DNA of 64,000 nucleotides from sequence record LC680884.1. The stretch is one strand, 5' to 3'. Within the stretch, counting starts at the first letter, position 1, and each line of letters begins with the position of its first letter. Both the position numbers and the translations under genes were made by a program. Below, piece after piece: positions 2,865 to 59,832 of this stretch. The notes under the pieces were generated by a model, which ran no database searches, was not told where the DNA came from, and saw only the letters and a list, made by a program, of their open reading frames with translations.

Positions 2865-4082
2865 CTATCTAACTAAAATTAATTTTTCTTTTGCTCTAGT
2901 AATTCCTGTGTATAACCAATTTTTATGAAATTTCTTATTTAATCTTTCCTCAAACAATAGTACATTATCAAATTCAGAACCTTGGCTTTTATGACAACTA
3001 ATGGCATATCCAAATTTAAATTCACTAATACCATAAGTTTCAATAATTTTCTTTCTAAATACATAAAGAGATTTTTCATCAAATGATTCCCTTACCTTTT
3101 CATTCATAAAAGGAATTTTATTCATATATAATTTAGGGAATTTTTCTTCTTTAAAGAATTCTGGTCTAAAACTTATCTTATATGTAGCAGATCTTTTTTG
3201 ATTTTCAATAGATTCTATTCTACCTATAAGACCATTTACTAATGAAACTTCTAAATTATCTTCATAAATAGTGTGTTCCCATTGATTTTTTCCACAAATA
3301 ATCTTATCTCCCTCTACAGGAAATGGATTTTCTATTCCCAATATAAATCGTCTATGATAAGCATTAATACTTTGTACAGTCTTATTATAACCAGCAATTA
3401 TTTGATCTGCACCTAAAAACATGTCTTTATATAACTCATGCCTTCTAATTACCTGTACCCTATCTCCATGAGTTCCATATGATATAAATTTTCCCTCCCT
3501 TGCCAACATTGATAAATAAATAATTGGGTTATCTAATGCTTGTCTCATAATCTCATCAAGAAAAACATCTGGATTTTGTAATAGAGTGTTACTACTATTG
3601 CCGACTGGGAGCAATTGTCCCGGATCCCCAAGAGCCATTGTCCTAATACCAAAAGAGTGTACTTCGTTAAGCATTCCTGTATCTACCATTGATACTTCAT
3701 CAATTACAACTAATTTAATTTTATCATCCATTTCATCTTTTTCTTTTAACCTGAATATAAATTTAAGGATTTCACCTGTTTCTGGATCTTTAACAGGAAT
3801 AGCATGATAGATAAATTTGTGAATAGTACTAGCACCTACATTTCCCTTTCGTGTTAGAACGTTTGCCGCCATTCCTGTATATGCAATAAATACTACCTCA
3901 TCAACATCTAAACCTATCTCTTCAATTATAAATTTAACTAATGTTGATTTTCCTGTACCTGCTAATCCTGCAATAGTGAATATTCTGTCTGGATCTTTAC
4001 CGTTGGTCTCCCTACCAAAATACCAATCAAGACATTCATTTTTAGCTTTATTTTGTTTATCAGTAAGAGTTATATCAGCCAA
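2865..4082 (-). CDS. Dda/RecD-like SF1B DNA helicase
   Basis: Walker A GLAGTGKS, IDEVSM, GDPGQL, AISCHKSQGSEF and LYTGITRAK motifs. Confidence 0.92.
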   Translation of the reverse strand: MADITLTDKQNKAKNECLDWYFGRETNGKDPDRIFTIAGLAGTGKSTLVKFIIEEIGLDVDEVVFIAYTGMAANVLTRKGNVGASTIHKFIYHAIPVKDPETGEILKFIFRLKEKDEMDDKIKLVVIDEVSMVDTGMLNEVHSFGIRTMALGDPGQLLPVGNSSNTLLQNPDVFLDEIMRQALDNPIIYLSMLAREGKFISYGTHGDRVQVIRRHELYKDMFLGADQIIAGYNKTVQSINAYHRRFILGIENPFPVEGDKIICGKNQWEHTIYEDNLEVSLVNGLIGRIESIENQKRSATYKISFRPEFFKEEKFPKLYMNKIPFMNEKVRESFDEKSLYVFRKKIIETYGISEFKFGYAISCHKSQGSEFDNVLLFEERLNKKFHKNWLYTGITRAKEKLILVR

Positions 4083-5471: not shown

Positions 5472-7427
5472 ATGCTAGATGTATTTGAGAATAACTTATT
5501 AACAAATGCAAATTTTGAAGGAGTTTTTGATGGAATCGTTATGGAAAGTAATGACGATAACTCAATTATTGTATATATACCTAAACTATTTATAAGTATA
5601 AATGAAAAAGATAATATATTAATTGCAAATGAGAATATAAAGAATACAAATATAATTGGAAATGATATAACAAAAACATCTGTTAAAACTATTAATGGGA
5701 TTGTATGTAAGCCATTAATTAAAAATCAGCAACTTATAATACCAGAAAAAGGAGAACATGTTGTTGTTGTATTTTTAGATGGTGATCCTCAAAGAGCATA
5801 CTATCTTAACTATAATATTTATGGGGATATCAGTGATAATAAATTCACTAAATCTCTCAGAGAAGAAAGCAATAAATTTAATATTTTAAATATTATTGAT
5901 GAATTTTCTCTCATATATAATAAGAGCAATAAATGCTTCTATATTACTAACGATTCATATCAAATTAGAATCTGTCCTGAAGGTATAACTTTTCTTAAGG
6001 ATGGAGAGGAAATTGATATGAAAGGAAAAGATGGTAAACAAGGCGAACGAGGTGAAAAAGGAGAACAGGGGGAGAAAGGTGAGAAGGGAGAAACAGGAGA
6101 GAAAGGTGAACAAGGCGAACGAGGTGAAAAAGGAGAGCAAGGAAAAAGGGGTGAAAAAGGTGAGAGAGGTGATCCTGGTCCAAGGGGAGAACCAGGACCA
6201 GCAGGAATGGACGGAATTCCCGGAGAGAAAGGTGAACAAGGAGAGAAGGGTGAACAAGGCGAACGAGGTGAAAAAGGAGAAAAGGGAGATCCTAGAACTT
6301 GGGATGATTTAGAAAATAAGCCTATTGGAAAAGAAGGTCAATCTTATTTTATTTCATCTAACAACTCTAGTGATGTTACCTTGGATTATACATTACATGA
6401 AGGAAATTTTATTGAAAATGATCAAGAATTAATTGATGCTAAAGGAAAGGAAGTTACTTTTAAAGAAATATACAATGAATGGCAAAGATTTTCTCATTCT
6501 AAGAAATCAGAGGATCAACCAGCGTCTACTGATGAAATCACTAAATGGAGTTATAATGACGCTAGTGATAGTATTAAATGTACTGTAAATTCTAGCACAT
6601 ATATAGGTTTTGTTAGTCATGAAAAATATGATAACTTTGTTCATGAAGCAGTACTCTCATCAACTAATGGAGATGATGATACTATTGGTTTAATTGCTGC
6701 ATTTACAACTGATTCTAGTGGAAGAGAGTATACAATATCAGCAATAAGAGTAAGAAACAACGACCAAGGACATGTCCAAGTTAATGGAGTAAATTATCAA
6801 TGGGCATTAGTTTATAATTATGGAAGATCAGATGAAAAGGTACTTGCCTTTAAGAATATCAATGATACTACTGGAGCATGGAAAGATATACCGAATGGTA
6901 CTAAAATAAGTATTAGACGTGAAGGAAATAAAATTCAGGCATTAACATCTTTATTTAATAGTAAAACTCTACTTGAGGAATCTATTTTAGAAATTGAGTT
7001 AACATCATTGGATATTCTTAAAAAATTTATAGGCGCACAACAATATGGATTCTCATGTTATTCCCAAAATGAAACAACATTTAGTGATTTATATTTTGCA
7101 GTTAATAATAATCTTATTTATGATATTAGAAATAATGATGTTTGGAAATTTGTGAATTACAAATGGATCATACAAACTAGTAGAAGCACAATAAAAGATT
7201 TTGGAGCAGGTAAATTTCTCATTAATTTACAGACAAGAAAATTATTTTACACAGATGTTAATGGAATTAAATTAATAATTTCAGGAAGAAATAATGATTC
7301 ATATGATACAAGTAATCGCCCAACAAAAAATCTATTTATAGGTATGCAGATTTATGATAAGAATTTAAAGAAACCATTATGGTATGATGGAAAAAATTGG
7401 AGAGATTCTACAGGAACGATTGCATAA
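5472..7427 (+). CDS. Virion protein: gp5/gpV-like OB-fold N-terminus, collagen-like stalk and C-terminal beta domain (baseplate spike or fibre)
   Basis: [21 protein letters not shown] resembles the spike OB-fold signature; 30 Gly-X-Y triplets; C-terminal [28 protein letters not shown] tail-fibre-like motif. Confidence 0.7.
6024..6293 (+). repeat. Collagen-like (Gly-X-Y)30 coding repeat
   Basis: [15 protein letters not shown]...GEK GDP; 30 uninterrupted triplets counted. Confidence 0.95.
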
Positions 7428-8026: not shown

Positions 8027-10573
8027 ATGATAGTAGATAATGACTTACTAATTCTAATGGATGATAATTCAATAAACAGTAGTTCTGCCGCCGACATGAG
8101 AACTTCTATTACGCATTCCAAGGGTAATAAAATTACCCTTGATAACATCAGCAGTTATTATGTATTTGATAATAAGATTAAATTTGGAATGAATTTTTTA
8201 AGAAAATATGAACATATTTTCAAGCAGTATTATATGACATATACTATTGAAGATAAATACTTTTATAGACCGGAATATATAAGCTATTTATTGTATGAAA
8301 CAACTGATCTATGGTACTTATTGTTATTTATTAACAATATGACTCGTCCTGATGAATTTAATAAAAATAATATTATTATATTTGATCCATCTTATTTAAG
8401 TGTGTTTAATGATATTATTGAAAAAGAAAAAAATTCAATAAATAATATGTCTAATCCAACAGTATTGGAACGAGAGACTGTCAGAGATTTAAATCAACCA
8501 AGTAAAAGAATTTTATCAAGTCGATATGATAAAAAGATTAGCCCATTAAATCCACCTGAAAAACCAAAGAAACTTACTACTATTACAGACTTTGTTAATA
8601 ATTTTAAAGATATATATTCTCCAATTATGAGAGGTAAATTATTAAAGAAAATCTATAAGATAACAGATAATACTGGTAAATATGCAATGTTAACCAATAC
8701 ATTTGTGTCTAATAAATTAAGATTGGACGATAATTGTGATACAGGTTTTCCTATAAGTTTTGGAAAAAATTATCGACAACTCTTTGAAGGTTATATTTTT
8801 ATTGATAATGAAGATGAATATGAGTTTAAACCCATTGTAATGGGTAACTGTAAATTAAATATTGATGATAAACAAGTAATCAATACTCTTGGTGAAAATT
8901 TTACAATTAATGAGAATATTTTTGAAACACAAACAAAAAATTCAGATTTCAAAACTGGTAGTACTGATGGTTGGGATGTATTGGATGGAGAGTTAATCAA
9001 AGACAATGAAGGTAAAAATATTCTAAAAAAAGTATATGAAAAACAAGAAAAGGGTTCTAATATTGCTAAAGTTAATCTTGATGTTTCATTAATTAAGACA
9101 TATAGAGATCTAGCTATTACAACAACTTATAAATCAATTGATAATGGAAACTTATTATTTTCAGGTGCATCAGTAACAGTTGAATATACAGATAATACTA
9201 AAATTGTATTTGAAAATAATAAAGAGTATGCCTATTTTAATAATAATGCTAATTTTACAGACTCTGTTATAATTGTTACATTTATTAAAGGTAAGACACT
9301 TAAAAATATCACTATTGATTTCCCAGTTGAGAGAAAACCAATGTATAATGAACTATTGAATGGTGAAGTGAATATTTCTCAACTAAAAGTCCAACCTGTT
9401 TTATATGATTCAGCAAAGATTAAGTTATCAGGAAATAGATGGCATAAATTTAAACTTCAATATGACATGATTGAGCAACCGTCATCTTATCTACAATTAT
9501 TATTTAAAGGCTCAAATGATACACAATATAAAAATATTAATGAATCTTCATTTGCATTTTCTCCTGATGGTAATTTAAGTAAAAATGAACAAAAGAATAC
9601 CATTTTAAATGTTTTTTATGACATTAATGAAGAGTTTATTTTTACTCAAGAATATTTAAATGATAATAATTTTTCTTATGATGATATAAATCCAATTAAT
9701 GGTTTCATCCCACAAGGAATAAATTATACAATTAGACAATATTCTAAATTAAAATTAGTTCCAAATACTAAATATATGATTCAGGGAAATAGAGATGATG
9801 TTATACAAATTTATATGAACGATGAACTAATTCTTGAGAAATCATCTGGTATTGATGATATTTATACTAAAGATATTATTGCTACTAAGGAAGAGATTGT
9901 AGATCTATTAGTTGTATATAAACATTTTAATGGAAATGGAAAAGCATTCTTTAATATAAAATCATTACCAGATAAATATAATAATCCAGACTGGGGGTTA
10001 GTAGATAATAAAGGATCTATTTTAATTCCTTCTTCCACTGATTGGAAAGGAACAACTAATAGTGTTATTTTAAATGATTACTCTTCAGGTCTAAATAATT
10101 ATTATTTTACTGGCGATGATAGAGGTTTATCTGATTATCGTTTAAAAGTTATGGTAAAAGGAAGTAAATATCATCAAGGAAATCTAGGAGTAATCTTTAG
10201 AATGCAAGGTGAGGATGAATATTATCTATATACTATAAGAAGAAAAAATATAGACAAAGGAATAGTTTATCCTATGTTATCTGGTTTATATAAAATCTCT
10301 CCTAAATATTCTGAGATAGATATTTCGTCAGATGGATTGCATAAAGTAAGAGGAAAATTATTATCAACTACTGAACAGACTTATCTAAGTGATGAAAATA
10401 ATTGTATTTTTATTATGATGTACCATAATAGAATTAGAGTTTATGACAGAGTTGGTGGATATCCAATTGTAGATTTTACTGATACTGATTCTCCACTATT
10501 GGAAGGTAGTTTTGGATTCAGTATCTTTGATCAATCAGATGTTGAATATACAGATATTGAAATTTCTTATTGA
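8027..10573 (+). CDS. Baseplate wedge-like protein (T4 gp53/LysM-like N-terminus) with C-terminal beta-sandwich domains
   Basis: YRPEYISYLLYETTDLWYLLLFINNM resembles the gp53 RPE..A..YG...L.W..L..N pattern; lies in a late structural cluster. Confidence 0.55.
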   Translation: MIVDNDLLILMDDNSINSSSAADMRTSITHSKGNKITLDNISSYYVFDNKIKFGMNFLRKYEHIFKQYYMTYTIEDKYFYRPEYISYLLYETTDLWYLLLFINNMTRPDEFNKNNIIIFDPSYLSVFNDIIEKEKNSINNMSNPTVLERETVRDLNQPSKRILSSRYDKKISPLNPPEKPKKLTTITDFVNNFKDIYSPIMRGKLLKKIYKITDNTGKYAMLTNTFVSNKLRLDDNCDTGFPISFGKNYRQLFEGYIFIDNEDEYEFKPIVMGNCKLNIDDKQVINTLGENFTINENIFETQTKNSDFKTGSTDGWDVLDGELIKDNEGKNILKKVYEKQEKGSNIAKVNLDVSLIKTYRDLAITTTYKSIDNGNLLFSGASVTVEYTDNTKIVFENNKEYAYFNNNANFTDSVIIVTFIKGKTLKNITIDFPVERKPMYNELLNGEVNISQLKVQPVLYDSAKIKLSGNRWHKFKLQYDMIEQPSSYLQLLFKGSNDTQYKNINESSFAFSPDGNLSKNEQKNTILNVFYDINEEFIFTQEYLNDNNFSYDDINPINGFIPQGINYTIRQYSKLKLVPNTKYMIQGNRDDVIQIYMNDELILEKSSGIDDIYTKDIIATKEEIVDLLVVYKHFNGNGKAFFNIKSLPDKYNNPDWGLVDNKGSILIPSSTDWKGTTNSVILNDYSSGLNNYYFTGDDRGLSDYRLKVMVKGSKYHQGNLGVIFRMQGEDEYYLYTIRRKNIDKGIVYPMLSGLYKISPKYSEIDISSDGLHKVRGKLLSTTEQTYLSDENNCIFIMMYHNRIRVYDRVGGYPIVDFTDTDSPLLEGSFGFSIFDQSDVEYTDIEISY

Positions 10574-41250: not shown

Positions 41251-42147
41251 AAGGCGATTGCCGTCTTTAAACCTCTTTAATTGTCTGGGAAGCTAAGTCA
41301 TTTAAGATATGCCAACCAGCAGCCAAGACTATACATTGCTCTGAAAGAAGCTAATTAGAATGGAACTAATATGGAAAGAAATAATAGGATTTGAAGGTCT
41401 ATATGAAATAAGTAATACAGGTTTAGTGAAATCACTTAAACGAGAAGTTAGTGGAAAACTAAACAGTATTCGAATAATAGACGAAAAAATTCTTTCCTCC
41501 ACAAATAATGGAAAAGGTTATCTTGTAGTCACATTATATAGGGATAAAAAACGTTATTACAAAAAAATACACAGATTAGTAGCAGAAGCATTTATTGAGA
41601 ATTCAGAAAATAAACCAGAAGTAAATCATAAAGATGGTATAAAAACTAATAATTGTGTATCTAATCTAGAATGGTCTACTACAAAAGAAAACTGTAATCA
41701 CAGACAAAAAACTGGTTTAGGAAATATCAATAATGCTACTAAAGCAAAATATAAACCTATAGCTAAGTTAGATCTAACTACAGGGGAAATAATTAGTACC
41801 TATAAAAGTGTAAAAGAGGTTGCTAAAGAATTTGACTGTAAAATAGATGCAATAGCAAGAGTAGCTAGAGGTCAAAGAAATTCCTATAAAGGCTATGGTT
41901 TTAAATACATTTAAGTGGAGCAATGTATAGTAAGGTTCAACGACTATCGAAAACACGGATATTCGAGAAATACGGTATCTGGAAGTGAGTAGAGTACAGC
42001 CTAAGCTAATGAGGTAGCGAAAGCTTTAAATGGAAAAGGGAGGAACTATTAATTTGGTAATAGAATTAATAGTTAAGATATAGTCTGATTCTAACAGAAA
42101 TGTTAGCCCAATGGTATGAGAGGTTGCGCTCTTATATAAACTAAATG
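41251..42147 (+). mobile_element. Group I self-splicing intron (897 nt)
   Basis: P1: exon GACGGU pairs with GCCGUC, with U.G at the splice site. R element GTTCAACGACTA (~41935) and S element AAGATATAGTC (42075). 14-bp stem 41328-41341/41918-41931 encloses the ORF. Terminal G at 42147. Splicing restores DYDG-D in frame. Confidence 0.93.
41360..41914 (+). CDS. Intron-encoded NUMOD4-HNH homing endonuclease
   Basis: WKEIIGFEGLYEISNTG.VKS (NUMOD4); HRLVAEAF...VNHKDG.KTNN...NLEW.T..EN (HNH); C-terminal S..E.A....IAR (NUMOD1-like). Confidence 0.93.
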   Translation: MELIWKEIIGFEGLYEISNTGLVKSLKREVSGKLNSIRIIDEKILSSTNNGKGYLVVTLYRDKKRYYKKIHRLVAEAFIENSENKPEVNHKDGIKTNNCVSNLEWSTTKENCNHRQKTGLGNINNATKAKYKPIAKLDLTTGEIISTYKSVKEVAKEFDCKIDAIARVARGQRNSYKGYGFKYI

Positions 42148-42309
42148 GACGTATTGAATATCATTCCAGTATTTGATAATAAGATGAAAGAACATTTCTC
42201 ATTATTATCACCACAGAATTTCTTAGTAGACAGAAATAACGGGCGGTTTAATGGAGATTTTGATCTACAGAAAGATCAAATTTTGGGAATCTTTATTCTA
42301 AATAATTAA
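42148..42309 (+). CDS. RNAP beta' N-terminal subunit, exon 2 (spliced product 426 aa)
   Basis: DVLNIIPVFDNKMKEHFSLLSPQNFLVDRNNGRFNGDFDLQKDQILGIFILNN*, 53 aa; supplies the third Asp of the catalytic motif. Confidence 0.9.
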   Translation, partial: DVLNIIPVFDNKMKEHFSLLSPQNFLVDRNNGRFNGDFDLQKDQILGIFILNN

Positions 42310-42319
42310 ATAGAAGAAA

Positions 42320-42360
42320 AATAAATATAAAGGATAATATTATTATCCTTTATATTTATT
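42320..42360 (+). terminator. Terminator-like hairpin
   Basis: 19-bp inverted repeat AATAAATATAAAGGATAAT/ATTATCCTTTATATTTATT. Confidence 0.7.
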
Positions 42361-42374
42361 AAAGGGGATTAAAA

Positions 42375-57371: not shown

Positions 57372-57707
57372 TTAATATTGTTTTTGAATATTTTCTATTA
57401 AATCAAACATTAATTTTTCAGCTTTTTTAAAACTACCTTTCCATATAGTAATAGATTCACTACATGACATACCATGATTAATTTTAAAAGTTAATGATCT
57501 CTTATTTTCTTTTATAGATCTTTGAATCAGTTTTAACATTCTATAAGTACATTCAAGAGTTAGAGGTGCATGATACTGATAACTATTAGAAAATGGTTTC
57601 TTACTTATAAAATTAAAACCATCAATCCTTTTAACTCCATCTTCCCAAATATTACGACAATGTAACTCTACATCTGATTTAATAAAATATCTAATCTTTT
57701 TTAACAT
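57372..57707 (-). CDS. Hypothetical protein
   Basis: 111 aa; SD GGGAG. Confidence 0.7.
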   Translation of the reverse strand: MLKKIRYFIKSDVELHCRNIWEDGVKRIDGFNFISKKPFSNSYQYHAPLTLECTYRMLKLIQRSIKENKRSLTFKINHGMSCSESITIWKGSFKKAEKLMFDLIENIQKQY

Positions 57708-57828
57708 CTATATTTTTCTCCCTATTTTTTAGCAGGATCATTTTTCCCATTGAATTAAATATAAATAGAAACGGTAACATACATAATATTATAAATATAT
57801 CAAATAAGATTATTAAGAAGTTAAACAT
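57691..57828 (-). CDS. Small hydrophobic protein (45 aa)
   Basis: SD AGGAGG just 3' of the tRNA; MFNFLIILFDIFIILCMLPFLFIFNSMGKMILLKNREKNIDVKKD. Confidence 0.45.
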   Translation of the reverse strand: MFNFLIILFDIFIILCMLPFLFIFNSMGKMILLKNREKNIDVKKD

Positions 57829-57871
57829 TATAGACCTCCTAAATAGGCAGTAAAAACCCTTCTAGACTTTA

Positions 57872-57945
57872 CTGGGATAGTAGGATTCGAACCTACGAAA
57901 TAGACATGTTAACAGCATGTTGCCTTACCACTTGGCTATATCCCA
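57872..57945 (-). tRNA. tRNA-Asn(GUU), CCA not encoded
   Basis: TGGGATA acceptor, D-arm GCCAAGTGGTAAGGC, anticodon arm ACATG-CTGTTAA-CATGT, T-arm GTAGG-TTCGAAT-CCTAC, TATCCCA + G73. Confidence 0.93.
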
Positions 57946-58035
57946 ATAAAATCTAGAAGAGTAAAATTTTTAAACTTATTAAATACTGCCATACTTAACA
58001 AGTTCATAGACAAATTTTAAAATATGTCGTCCTTA

Positions 58036-58047
58036 TATTTATATGTT
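58036..58047 (-). promoter_or_regulatory. Late-type promoter motif for the tRNA
   Basis: AACA-TATAAA-TA, ~90 nt upstream of the tRNA 5' end. Confidence 0.5.
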
Positions 58048-58081
58048 AAGTGTAGGATTATTTTTATAAAAATTAATGAAA

Positions 58082-58441
58082 TTAAAATTTTAATATTTCA
58101 TCAATTAAAGAACGAATAATAGTCTTGTCTCTATTTAATTTTGGATGAGAAAGATGTTTATCTAACTCTTCTATATCTGCTTTAAGAATATTAAATTGAC
58201 CAAGATTCATAGATCTTTTTAAATGTGTAAGATATTCAATATTCTTAATCCACTTGCTTTTAAACGGAGAAGAGAATTCTTCTTGTAGTTCATAATTTTT
58301 ATTATAATCTAAGAGTTCTTCAATAGCTAAATTTTTATAAATATTAATAGCTCTTTCTATTTCAGCTTTTAAATGTGTATGTAATGCATCAATTTCTTTT
58401 TCAAACTTTTTTAGAAGCAAAGCTTCAAGTACTATATTCAC
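58082..58441 (-). CDS. Hypothetical protein
   Basis: GTG start with SD AAAGGA; 119 aa. Confidence 0.7.
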   Translation of the reverse strand: MNIVLEALLLKKFEKEIDALHTHLKAEIERAINIYKNLAIEELLDYNKNYELQEEFSSPFKSKWIKNIEYLTHLKRSMNLGQFNILKADIEELDKHLSHPKLNRDKTIIRSLIDEILKF

Positions 58442-58492
58442 TTAAATCATTCCTTTCAATAATTTACCCCTTCTAAATCTTATTAGTTAAAT

Positions 58493-58646
58493 CAATGGCG
58501 AACAGAATTGATTAGACCAATAAAAATTAGAAGGAGTATCGGATTGGATGTAATAGAAAGATCGTTATCATCTAACTATTAATAGGGAATAGAAACGTTT
58601 GATGGTTATATTTTCTTAAATATAAAAAAGTGTTTTCCGCCAATGA
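58493..58646. ncRNA. Putative ~150-nt structured element
   Basis: Ends pair (TCAATGGCGAACA / TGTTTTCCGCCAATGA); internal stems; no ORF; strand ambiguous. Confidence 0.35.
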
Positions 58647-58670
58647 AAAGCTAATTTTATATTTTAGATT

Positions 58671-58931
58671 TGGTGACTGCTGTTGGAATTGCACCAACAT
58701 TAACAACTAGAACAGTCACATTGTCACCAAGAGGATCGGTAAACCTCTCAGTGACTAATGCGGAGGTGAAACAAAAACCAATGACAAAGATCATCCCATA
58801 AAGAGTTTACCTATAGAGGTATGCACAGAGTACTAAATGGAGAAATCACATTGCGAACAGTTGAGTAAGAAGGAGACCTCTCACTATCTCCTTCCGTGTG
58901 AACATCGTGAAAGGATGCTACTCTCACACGT
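58671..58931 (-). ncRNA. Putative ~260-nt structured RNA with a tRNA-like 3' end
   Basis: GC-richer, ORF-free island with at least four helices whose G.U pairs only work on the minus strand; starts at the +1 of a late motif; ends in T-arm/acceptor + ACCA. Confidence 0.75.
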
Positions 58932-58942
58932 ATTAAATTGTT
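58931..58942 (-). promoter_or_regulatory. Late-type promoter motif for the ncRNA
   Basis: AACA-ATTTAA-TA; the predicted +1 A (58931) directly precedes the first helix CGTGTG. Confidence 0.65.
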
Positions 58943-59001
58943 TGAAATGCAGGGTAATTTTTAAAATAAAAAAGAGAAATAAATTTTTTAAAACTTAATA
59001 T

Positions 59002-59706
59002 TTATGCAAGAAGTTCATCTTCTACTTCAATCTTATTAGGATTTTCAATATCTTTAATATTAAGTTTTAATAGACTCTTGTCTAGGATATCACCATTAAT
59101 ACTTCCTTCTCTATCTTCTTTCTGACTAAGTTGTTCTAAATTACCTAATAATACTTGGAAATTTTCAGTATTGGCTGACTCATACTTATTAATAAACTTA
59201 GTATAGTTACCAAATACATAGTTAAGGTTTACAAAAATCTTTCCAGAGTGTACTAGCTCATGGACAGTTTTTGTAAGTGGAACTAACCCTATATAATTCT
59301 GATAATGTAATTCCATGACTTCTTCAGCAATATCAAATGGATTAATTCTTTTTTCTCCATTAACAAGAATATGTTCATCTAGTACTATGCTTACAATATC
59401 AAAAAGAGTAAAAGGGTAGTGATGGAATTCTAAACCAACTTTTTTAATTTCCTTTGTATCTACCATTGGAAGGAAAGTACATTTTGTCAAATCTAGTTCA
59501 TTTTTTAAAAAGCCAATATAAGTTTTATATTCAAATGAACGTCTAATTATCTTTTCAATTCGTTTGATAAATTTTAGTCTTTCCTTCTCATTAGAAGTAA
59601 TTTCAAAATTAAAAAAGTCTGCACGATCATCAATAGAATCAATTACAACTTCATAAGACTCATCTTCATTTATAAGACTTGGATTATTCATCTTTGGTAC
59701 TAACAT
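59002..59706 (-). CDS. HNH-like protein, paralogue of 47052-47744
   Basis: IRRSFEYKTYIGFLKNELDLTKC...LEFHHYPFT...GLVPLTKTVHELVH; late motif at 59738-59749. Confidence 0.6.
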   Translation of the reverse strand: MLVPKMNNPSLINEDESYEVVIDSIDDRADFFNFEITSNEKERLKFIKRIEKIIRRSFEYKTYIGFLKNELDLTKCTFLPMVDTKEIKKVGLEFHHYPFTLFDIVSIVLDEHILVNGEKRINPFDIAEEVMELHYQNYIGLVPLTKTVHELVHSGKIFVNLNYVFGNYTKFINKYESANTENFQVLLGNLEQLSQKEDREGSINGDILDKSLLKLNIKDIENPNKIEVEDELLA

Positions 59707-59784
59707 TTTTTCTCACCATCCTTATAGTATTATGAAATATTATATTGTTTATTTTAATTATTATTAATAACATATACATGTTTC

Positions 59785-59797
59785 AAATATATATTAT
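59785..59797 (+). promoter_or_regulatory. Early-type promoter motif
   Basis: Exact 13-mer, 35 nt before the RNase H ATG. Confidence 0.75.
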
Positions 59798-59832
59798 TAT
59801 AATGAATACATATTTTTTAGGAGGAAATTCAT

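Follow-up and report, generated by a model that had tools for sequence, protein, structure and literature searches.

An unannotated island headed by a late transcription start

The window analysed here, a stretch of 64,000 nt from sequence record LC680884.1, contains on its minus strand, at positions 58671-58931, an island that we tentatively read as the beginning of a late phage transcription unit: a structured RNA of about 260 nt that starts at a mapped late transcription start site (TSS) and carries, as its 3′ 47 nt, a module built like the top half of a tRNA. The surrounding sequence (58300-59300) is 100% identical to Bacillus phage PBS1, 99.5% to AR9, 99.4% to Internexus, and 98.9% to Goe21. 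The island lies within a 560-nt gap that separates two minus-strand genes, the homologues of gp242 (59002-59706) and gp243 (58082-58441), and this gap holds no annotated feature in the records of any of the four PBS1-group genomes. The sole tRNA of the phage, tRNA-Asn(GUU) at 57871-57946, is encoded on the same strand as the island. While gp242 is widespread among jumbo phages, gp243, g246, and the g243-g246 block as a whole are confined to the PBS1 group, and a comparison of the neighboring proteins with Pfam and PHROGs gave no functional hint.

The original prediction, made from the letters of the sequence, placed the start of a late minus-strand transcript at the +1 of the motif AACA-ATTTAA-TA (AACA at 58939-58942, N6 = ATTTAA, then T58932 and A58931), and published differential RNA sequencing (dRNA-seq) of AR9 confirms this position to the base. 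Specifically, a late AR9 TSS is tabulated at 207979 (+) by Lavysh et al. 2017 (PMC5312081, Table S3), with a step height of 73 and an enrichment of 2.02, for which the upstream sequence is given as ...gcatttcaaacaatttaatA; ...ccctgcatttcaaacaatttaatA. The two genomes are co-linear in this region, the AR9 coordinate being 266910 minus the window coordinate, so that AR9 207979 (+) maps to window position 58931, the base predicted as +1. The locus combines an AACA-N6-T(A/G) promoter with a mapped late TSS, as an AR9-type late unit does, and these data show that the phage non-virion RNA polymerase (nvRNAP) starts transcription at A58931.

In the published table (PMC5312081), TSS 207979 carries the label “tRNA”, and TSS 208874 (approximately window position 58036), with a step height of 2101, is assigned to g244 with an untranslated region (UTR) of 146 nt. 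The tRNA-Asn gene itself occupies AR9 208904-208977, 30 nt downstream of TSS 208874 and about 900 nt downstream of TSS 207979, and both labels appear to be misassigned. Since tRNA-Asn has its own, much stronger TSS at 208874, the start at 207979 is an orphan that heads the noncoding island. The AR9 GenBank and RefSeq records annotate no tRNA in the stretch 208904-208977.

Table 1. Features of the island and of the sequence between it and the gp243 homologue (window coordinates)
Feature	Position	Strand	Evidence
Late (nvRNAP) promoter AACA-N6-TA, +1 = A58931	58931..58942	-	Sequence; AR9 dRNA-seq TSS, upstream 50 nt identical
Hairpin H1, outer CGUGUG(A)/..CACACG, inner GCAUC/GAUGU	58895..58930	-	Minimum free energy (MFE) and centroid structures
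Hairpin H2, 9 bp GAAGGAGAU/GUCUCCUUC, 8-nt loop	58869..58894	-	Predicted fold
Central, weakly structured segment with GGUAAAC (58805-58811)	58756..58868	-	Predicted fold
Hairpin H3, 12 bp including 2 G.U, 9-nt loop	58723..58755	-	Predicted fold
tRNA top-half module	58671..58717	-	Sequence, predicted fold, pattern scans
A/U-rich trailer, weak hairpin and U-run, possible primary 3′ end	58596..58670	-	z-score -2.97; not called a terminator
Rest of leader ahead of g243, long imperfect hairpin (58465-58538)	58442..58560	-	z-score -5.9

Composition and predicted fold of the RNA

The island had been described as GC-enriched and ORF-free. The enrichment is evident, with a G+C content of 0.38-0.45, comparable to that of the neighboring tRNA gene, versus a window mean of 0.278. 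Strictly speaking, however, the island is poor in open reading frames (ORFs) rather than free of them, as it is overlapped on either strand by ORFs of 38-53 aa, although no Shine-Dalgarno sequence precedes any of them. The MFE of the whole RNA is -77.2 kcal/mol on the minus strand (z-score -2.57) versus -61.6 on the plus strand (z-score -1.23), in agreement with the claim that its G.U pairs favor one strand. Compared with shuffled sequences, the 5′ 64 nt, which comprise hairpins H1 and H2, have a z-score of -4.07, and the 3′ 90 nt, which comprise hairpin H3 and the module, have a z-score of -5.08; the middle is loosely structured. Altogether, a structured RNA with unconvincing coding potential is supported.

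The hairpins, the repeats, and the 47-nt 3′ module of the original prediction were all recovered on the minus strand where it had placed them, although two of the smaller elements do not clearly exceed chance. The outer strands of H1 lie at 58925-58930 (CGUGUG) and 58895-58900 (CACACG). The H3 loop sequence GUUUACC (58738-58744) is indeed complementary to the upstream GGUAAAC, as proposed for a pseudoknot or alternative fold, but a 7-nt complement was matched in 122 of 3000 shuffles (4%), so that the pairing exceeds chance only marginally. The hexamer UGAGAG does occur three times; as some 6-mer is tripled in 27% of shuffles, we dismissed this repeat as a chance product and not a signal. In the central segment, UCACCUCC (58762-58769, minus strand) is mostly unpaired in the predicted fold and is identical to 8 nt of the 16S rRNA 3′ tail.

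A tRNA top-half module at the 3′ end of the island

Counted from the start at 58931, the module spans RNA positions 215-261, and its parts read GACUGUU, CUAGUUGUUAAU, GUUGG-UGCAAUU-CCAAC, AGCAGUC, and ACCA. On the minus strand, these are the 5′ strand of the acceptor (58711-58717), a D-loop-like linker of 12 nt (58699-58710), the T arm (58682-58698), the 3′ strand of the acceptor (58675-58681), and A73 with CCA (58671-58674); the base ahead of G+1 is U58718. The tRNA likeness that had been claimed for these 47 nt is borne out by the 7-bp acceptor with its discriminator and CCA and by the T arm, which has U54, C56, and A58 (position 55 being G, not U) and is identical at 17 of 17 positions to T arms of phage tRNAs called by ARAGORN. 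No cloverleaf is formed, as the D and anticodon arms are absent and 12 nt separate the acceptor and T stems.

We used strict pattern scans to assess how rare such an arrangement is, since in a covariance model of the module the invariant T arm would outweigh everything else, and ordinary tRNAs would be matched. The strict pattern called for a 7-bp stem in which no more than one pair is G.U, a linker of 3-25 nt, and then a 5-bp stem capped by a 7-nt loop (U1, A5), with the 3′ strand of the first stem stacked directly on it and NCCA at the end. Its single site in the window is the module, where 0.01 sites are expected per random 64 kb on both strands. A tighter mini-tRNA pattern had no occurrence in Markov nulls of 2.4 Mb of other fetched loci.

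The linker can be written CU-AGUUGUUA-AU, in which AGUUGUUA agrees at 7 of 8 positions with AGUAGUUA, a D-loop variant of the tRNAs that share the T arm. Judging from these few sequences, the module would resemble a tRNA that has kept its acceptor, D-loop, T arm, and CCA and has lost its D stem and anticodon arm. The only substitution among the relatives of the RNA, G/A at 58680, changes an acceptor U.G pair to U-A and thereby keeps the pair. The module is not a recent copy of tRNA-Asn, because the T-loop of the latter is the canonical UUCGAAU and its gene does not encode the CCA (…UAUCCCA-G-UAA), unlike the module.

The linker also contains UUGUUAA, a perfect Asn (GUU) anticodon loop whose anticodon is that of the sole tRNA of the phage. 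It has no presenting stem, its chance of arising at random was roughly estimated as 5-10%, and it is probably fortuitous.

Family searches and conservation

At the module, ARAGORN called no tRNA (default and -ps), and its -ps70 setting produced spurious calls only. Scanning the window with Rfam 15 at gathering thresholds matched tRNA-Asn alone, and scanning 58300-59300 at E ≤ 10 yielded only chance-level matches to microRNA (miRNA) and small nucleolar RNA (snoRNA) models, with the tRNA model absent. The covariance-model search that the original prediction had called for thus returned no known family, even at this permissive threshold. As a control, both ARAGORN and Rfam detected the transfer-messenger RNA (tmRNA) in one of the fetched loci (L250), and Rfam detected ROOL in another (L031). 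The assertion that the RNA is not a tmRNA also held: the 5′ end is locked in H1, the two ends are unpaired, pair 3-70 is C-G, and both the ARAGORN tmRNA search and RF00023 were negative. The element is therefore outside the tRNA, tmRNA, viral tRNA-like structure (TLS), YrlA, 6S, ROOL/GOLLD, T-box, and cobalamin families, and in our literature searches the RNA was undescribed.

Searches with blastn (word size 11), using 1001 nt and also 286 nt at E ≤ 10, against 50,697 phage records retrieved seven PBS1-group records only. Among the four PBS1-group genomes, the RNA differs by the G/A substitution at 58680 and by a 4-nt deletion in Goe21 (58801-58804), which falls in the loose middle. Synteny searches were likewise negative: gp242, queried both singly and as an alignment of five members against IMG/VR and metagenomes, together with gp243 and g246 led to 109 related loci, of which 80 are metagenomic and 29 viral, and none of them carries the RNA.

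The gap that follows the gp242 homologue is short in Listeria phage LPJP1 and Staphylococcus phage MarsHill. In phage BpSp (gp242 identity 56%) and in a metagenomic phage, L190 (66%), the late-promoter motif is kept directly after the gp242 homologue, and the RNAs that follow it are strongly structured (z-scores of -10.0 and -8.4, respectively) and unrelated in sequence to the PBS1 RNA. Local alignments of the PBS1 RNA with these two RNAs were no better than those with shuffles, and the 7-10-mers shared by the PBS1 and L190 RNAs were dismissed as chance. The BpSp RNA (L005 4737-4900) and the L190 RNA (3744-3935) carry anti-Shine-Dalgarno-like stretches (CACCUCCU; ACCUCCUUUC). On the opposite strand of L190, a perfect Shine-Dalgarno sequence precedes a 27-aa hydrophobic/basic ORF, a layout that resembles type I toxin-antitoxin systems.

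Relatives of the T arm and of the module

An exact search of IMG/VR with the T arm GUUGG-UGCAAUU-CCAAC gives 99 matches; in a quarter of these or more, the sequence serves as T arm in phage tRNAs that ARAGORN calls (Met, Cys, Phe, Tyr, Asn, Ile), and further matches are evident tRNA-like genes that ARAGORN missed. Viral and bacterial matches taken together, the ARAGORN-called tRNAs that use the 17-mer as their T arm number 25 in viruses and 15 in bacteria. In the tRNAs that share it, the D-loop is AGUAGUA or AGUAGUUA, without the usual GG, and the T-loop has G55, which suggests that G55 and the GG-less D-loops form a covarying, non-canonical tRNA elbow. Matches to GTTGGTGCAATTCCAAC in IMG/VR and GTDB (L011-L109, L219-L338) comprise many tRNAs of phages and candidate phyla radiation (CPR) bacteria, mostly Met-CAU, in which the UGCAAUU T-loop (G55) is paired with AGUAGUA or AGCAGUA D-loops lacking G18-G19.

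The same 17-mer also occurs as a hairpin in Rfam-confirmed cobalamin riboswitches (L267, L268, L235, L230, L274). Considered by itself, this hairpin is a general-purpose T-loop unit, and because of these riboswitch occurrences it is the stacked 7-bp stem and the ACCA that carry the tRNA-like reading of the PBS1 module.

Both of these features recur in L053, a 161-kb viral contig (IMGVR_UViG_3300045988_166770), in which positions 2009-2053 read GGUUGAG, ACAAGUAUUA, the same T arm, CUCAACU, and ACCA. This module of 45 nt, with a 7-bp stem and a 10-nt linker, has the architecture of the PBS1 module, and its acceptor is different yet fully complementary. It sits in the anticodon loop of a tRNA (1973-2091) that Rfam detects with a long insertion (47 bits) and ARAGORN misses. 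When the 45 nt are deleted in silico, the loop becomes CUCUAAA, and ARAGORN calls a canonical tRNA with anticodon CUA, that is, an amber suppressor. From this insertion and its clean removal, we conclude that the module is a discrete cassette present in at least two unrelated phages. Provisionally, PBS1/AR9 and L053 make up a class of free-standing top-half modules, whose only two independent members were each retrieved by way of the T arm that they have in common. Each has a 7-bp stem, a linker of 10-12 nt, the T arm, a stacked 3′ strand, and ACCA, and the two stems differ while remaining complementary.

Variants with shorter stems or no CCA occur beside tRNA-Leu in a tRNA cluster that contains ROOL (L031), before U-runs (L058, L094), and in 5′ leaders (the L017 family). 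In L017 (approximately 8038-8095), the motif lies between a terminator and the Shine-Dalgarno sequence of a 121-aa gene in a phage structural module; it consists of a closing stem, an A-rich linker of 9-12 nt, and the identical T-loop hairpin, and has no Rfam match. This motif is also found in L020, L022, L043, L075, L084, L095, L105, L249, and L259, and its closing stem covaries (CGUGUU/AAACGCG vs CACGUU/AAACGUG).

In six Bacillaceae genomes (Rossellomorea, Niallia, Metabacillus, Schinkia, and B. coahuilensis among them), a tRNA-like element is located just upstream of genes for alpha/beta-type small acid-soluble spore proteins (SASP), the SASP assignment resting on Pfam PF00269 as run on L302 only (L302, ~6795-6870 on the minus strand; L229, L238, L297, L299, L317). 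The element reads UGGGUUA ... same T arm ... UAACCCA-ACCA, with a 7-bp stem that shows compensatory changes, a middle of 25-38 nt, and NCCA; it is unannotated and has no match in Rfam or ARAGORN. In L250, a Bacillaceae contig from a metagenome-assembled genome (MAG; JBEQAC010000096.1), positions 6056-7236 of the minus strand hold a tmRNA, RNase P RNA, a tRNA-like element with the T arm, and signal recognition particle (SRP) RNA head to tail within 1.2 kb, an unusual cluster of housekeeping RNA genes.

Probable continuation of the transcript beyond the module

We found no intrinsic terminator (a G+C-rich hairpin followed by a U-tract) in 57700-59800, and the module is followed by ACCAAAUCUAAAAU. 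The downstream gene g243 (AR9 208469-208828) has a TSS in neither the early nor the late promoter table (PMC5312081), and its expression is late (1.5, 572, and 2326 at 5, 20, and 40 min, respectively) and above that of g242. Since g243 is late and has no TSS of its own, some of the 207979 transcripts probably run on into it. Given that no terminator follows the module either, the transcript may continue past 58671 as a 490-nt leader.

A second late-promoter motif of the AACA-N6-TA type (AACA-CUUUUU-UA; 58623-58634, minus strand) lies inside the A/U-rich trailer and is absent from the published TSS list. The hairpin at 58465-58538 has about 29 bp, lies just upstream of the g243 ribosome-binding site, and differs by one substitution in Internexus.

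Interpretation and alternative explanations

The reading that we favor, while giving it somewhat less than an even chance, is that of a late phage transcription unit whose first ~260 nt are a structured noncoding RNA and whose top-half module acts as tRNA-type punctuation. The predicted fold would consist of two 5′ hairpins, a loose middle with the unpaired, anti-Shine-Dalgarno-like UCACCUCC, a 12-bp hairpin, and the 3′ module. Host tRNA-maturation enzymes would recognize the module: RNase P would cleave at 58718/58717, and 3′ exonucleases would shorten the end as far as the CCA, giving a 5′ RNA of ~214 nt, a mini-tRNA of 47 nt, and the g243 mRNA or its leader. A 12-bp acceptor/T helix with U at -1, G1-C72, A73, and a 3′ CCA is a sufficient substrate for bacterial RNase P, and the module has every one of these features, including the coaxial 12-bp helix. 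The mapped late TSS, the GC-rich island, the strand-specific stability, the domain z-scores, the rarity of the pattern, and the identity of the T arm to those of tRNAs all speak for this reading. The likeness of the linker to a D-loop, the pair-keeping substitution, the L053 sibling, and a CCA that is encoded, unlike that of tRNA-Asn, are also consistent with it.

Several points weigh against it. Both the 3′ end at 58671 and the processing are inferred from sequence, and the 207979 promoter is, by step height, about 30 times weaker than the tRNA-Asn promoter. In the predicted fold, G-2 and U-1 can pair with A73 and C74, extending the stem to 8-9 bp, which could hinder RNase P. The same T-loop hairpin serves cobalamin riboswitches and 5′ leaders, so that tRNA mimicry is not required to explain it. 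Moreover, because the RNA has no homologue outside the PBS1 species-level group, it provides neither covariation nor evidence of purifying selection. Finally, as g243 is late and has no TSS of its own, the RNA may be merely the g243 leader.

This last point, taken further, gives an explanation that we consider doubtful but worth weighing, in which the whole region is a long structured 5′ leader of g243 with no separate small RNA, and the module is either a generic leader stabilizer or a decayed tRNA-gene relic without its former D and anticodon arms. The late expression of g243 at a level above g242, its absence from the TSS tables, the lack of a terminator between module and gene, and the restriction of the g243-g246 block to the PBS1 group would all fit a leader, as would the occurrence of the T arm with a closing stem in other 5′ leaders, namely those of a phage structural gene (with a covarying stem) and of SASP genes in six Bacillaceae (with NCCA). 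However, 230 nt and a second large hairpin intervene between the module and the g243 start, and although decay would be expected of a relic, the module has two perfect stems and an intact ACCA. A leader is also compatible with RNase P punctuation; the two readings overlap, because an RNase P cut would leave the g243 mRNA with a helix-protected 5′ end. A wider version of the punctuation idea, which we regard as unlikely, is a transplantable phage “tRNA top-half” cassette of 45-47 nt that host tRNA-maturation enzymes would read and through which phages would cleave or gate other RNAs. Its task in PBS1/AR9 would be to close off a late regulatory RNA and part it from g243, and in L053 its excision would time the function of the amber suppressor.

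The remaining explanations give the RNA a role in trans or none at all. As a trans-acting late small RNA (sRNA), it would use the unpaired, anti-Shine-Dalgarno-like UUUGUUUCACCUCC to pair with ribosome-binding sites and damp the translation of host or earlier phage mRNAs, the mini-tRNA serving only as a 3′ structure. The PBS1, BpSp, and L190 RNAs, although unrelated in sequence, each contain 8-10 nt identical to the 16S rRNA 3′ tail, a match seen in 196, 50, and 1 of 5000 shuffles, respectively; the motif is mostly unpaired in PBS1 and, in BpSp, is single-stranded between a 5′ hairpin and a terminator hairpin, the classic sRNA layout. On the other hand, the motif was spotted post hoc, the PBS1 match has little weight when taken singly (p about 0.04), the targets predicted in the window were nothing but generic ribosome-binding-site matches, and a generic anti-ribosome-binding-site RNA would strike the late mRNAs of the phage as well, which leaves this role quite unlikely. 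We find it distinctly improbable that, in line with the original prediction, the RNA acts as decoy or mimic towards a host factor that binds tRNA (RNase P, the CCA-adding enzyme, T-loop modification enzymes, the elbow and NCCA contacts of T-boxes, or a tRNA-directed defense nuclease). The acceptor stem, elbow-type T-loop, and CCA are, as is well established, the parts read by enzymes that ignore the anticodon, the timing is late, and the T arm is of the phage-tRNA type, unlike that of the phage's own tRNA-Asn; yet the promoter is modest, conservation is limited to one phage species, and an anticodon arm is what known anticodon nucleases and T-box specifiers depend on. The absence of that arm rules out mimicry towards factors that read the anticodon. 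That the island is nonfunctional, being a fortuitous intergenic structure or a small protein gene (a 45-aa ORF at 58657-58794, minus strand), is very improbable: ORFs of 38-53 aa do overlap it and phylogenetic support is absent, but the TSS is mapped, the ORFs have no Shine-Dalgarno sequence, and the pattern statistics and the identity of the T arm to those of real tRNAs argue against chance.

PBS1 and AR9 are classical model phages, with uracil DNA and two multisubunit RNA polymerases, yet none of the genome records annotates the transcription unit. Should the module be processed, as the favored reading has it, it would offer a natural example, bacterial or phage, of punctuation by half a tRNA and a ready-made minimal substrate with which to ask which features RNase P, the CCA enzyme, and the T-loop enzymes recognize in vivo; a wider use is hinted at by the sibling within a suppressor tRNA. 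Should the RNA prove to be a leader and nothing more, the finding would still correct the annotation and the promoter assignment in the published table.

Other features of the window

The gap between g243 and g244, which contains the tRNA, is about 62 nt longer in PBS1 than in AR9, and the tRNA leader is about 90 nt in PBS1 versus 30 nt in AR9. A second GC-enriched, ORF-free island lies at 41915-42374 on the plus strand (core 41997-42107), directly 3′ of ORF 41360-41914. It matches the group I intron model RF00028 with 31.6 bits (E 3e-6), which is sub-threshold but significant, and contains the AAGAUAUAGUC motif; a putative group I intron at this site may split a gene.

Comparison with known systems

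Several known RNAs share single traits with the PBS1 RNA. Like the tRNA-like domain of tmRNA, it has an acceptor/T-arm structure with no anticodon and an ACCA end, but its ends are unpaired, it has C3-G70 instead of G3.U70, and it contains neither a tag reading frame nor a ring of pseudoknots. ROOL and GOLLD are likewise structured phage noncoding RNAs close to tRNA genes; they are far larger (~570-800 nt), and Rfam was negative for them in the PBS1 RNA. In Rfam-confirmed cobalamin aptamers, the 17-nt T-loop hairpin GUUGGUGCAAUUCCAAC is identical, whereas the rest of the aptamer is absent from the PBS1 RNA and the riboswitch flanks lack the stacked 7-bp stem and ACCA. The stable RNAs C and D (species 1 and 2) of phage T4, encoded in its tRNA cluster, are small phage RNAs tied to tRNA genes and tRNA processing. 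They lie in a tRNA operon, whereas the PBS1 RNA has its own late promoter.

By structure, the element seems closest to the acceptor/T-arm minihelix of tRNA, the classic model substrate of RNase P and the CCA-adding enzyme. The two have in common a 7-bp acceptor on a 5-bp T stem, a 7-nt T-loop with U54, C56, and A58, as well as A73, CCA, U-1, and G1-C72; the PBS1 module differs in being natural and genome-encoded, in ending a structured RNA of ~214 nt, and in its 12-nt linker and G55. By position, it appears closest to the eukaryotic mascRNA element of MALAT1 and MEN-beta. That element folds into a complete cloverleaf, its anticodon loop being poorly conserved, whereas the PBS1 module is a phage element without D stem or anticodon arm whose cleavage is predicted. 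In both cases, however, a tRNA-like fold lies downstream of a longer noncoding RNA, and in PBS1, as for mascRNA, the putative RNase P cut would set the 3′ end of the upstream RNA.

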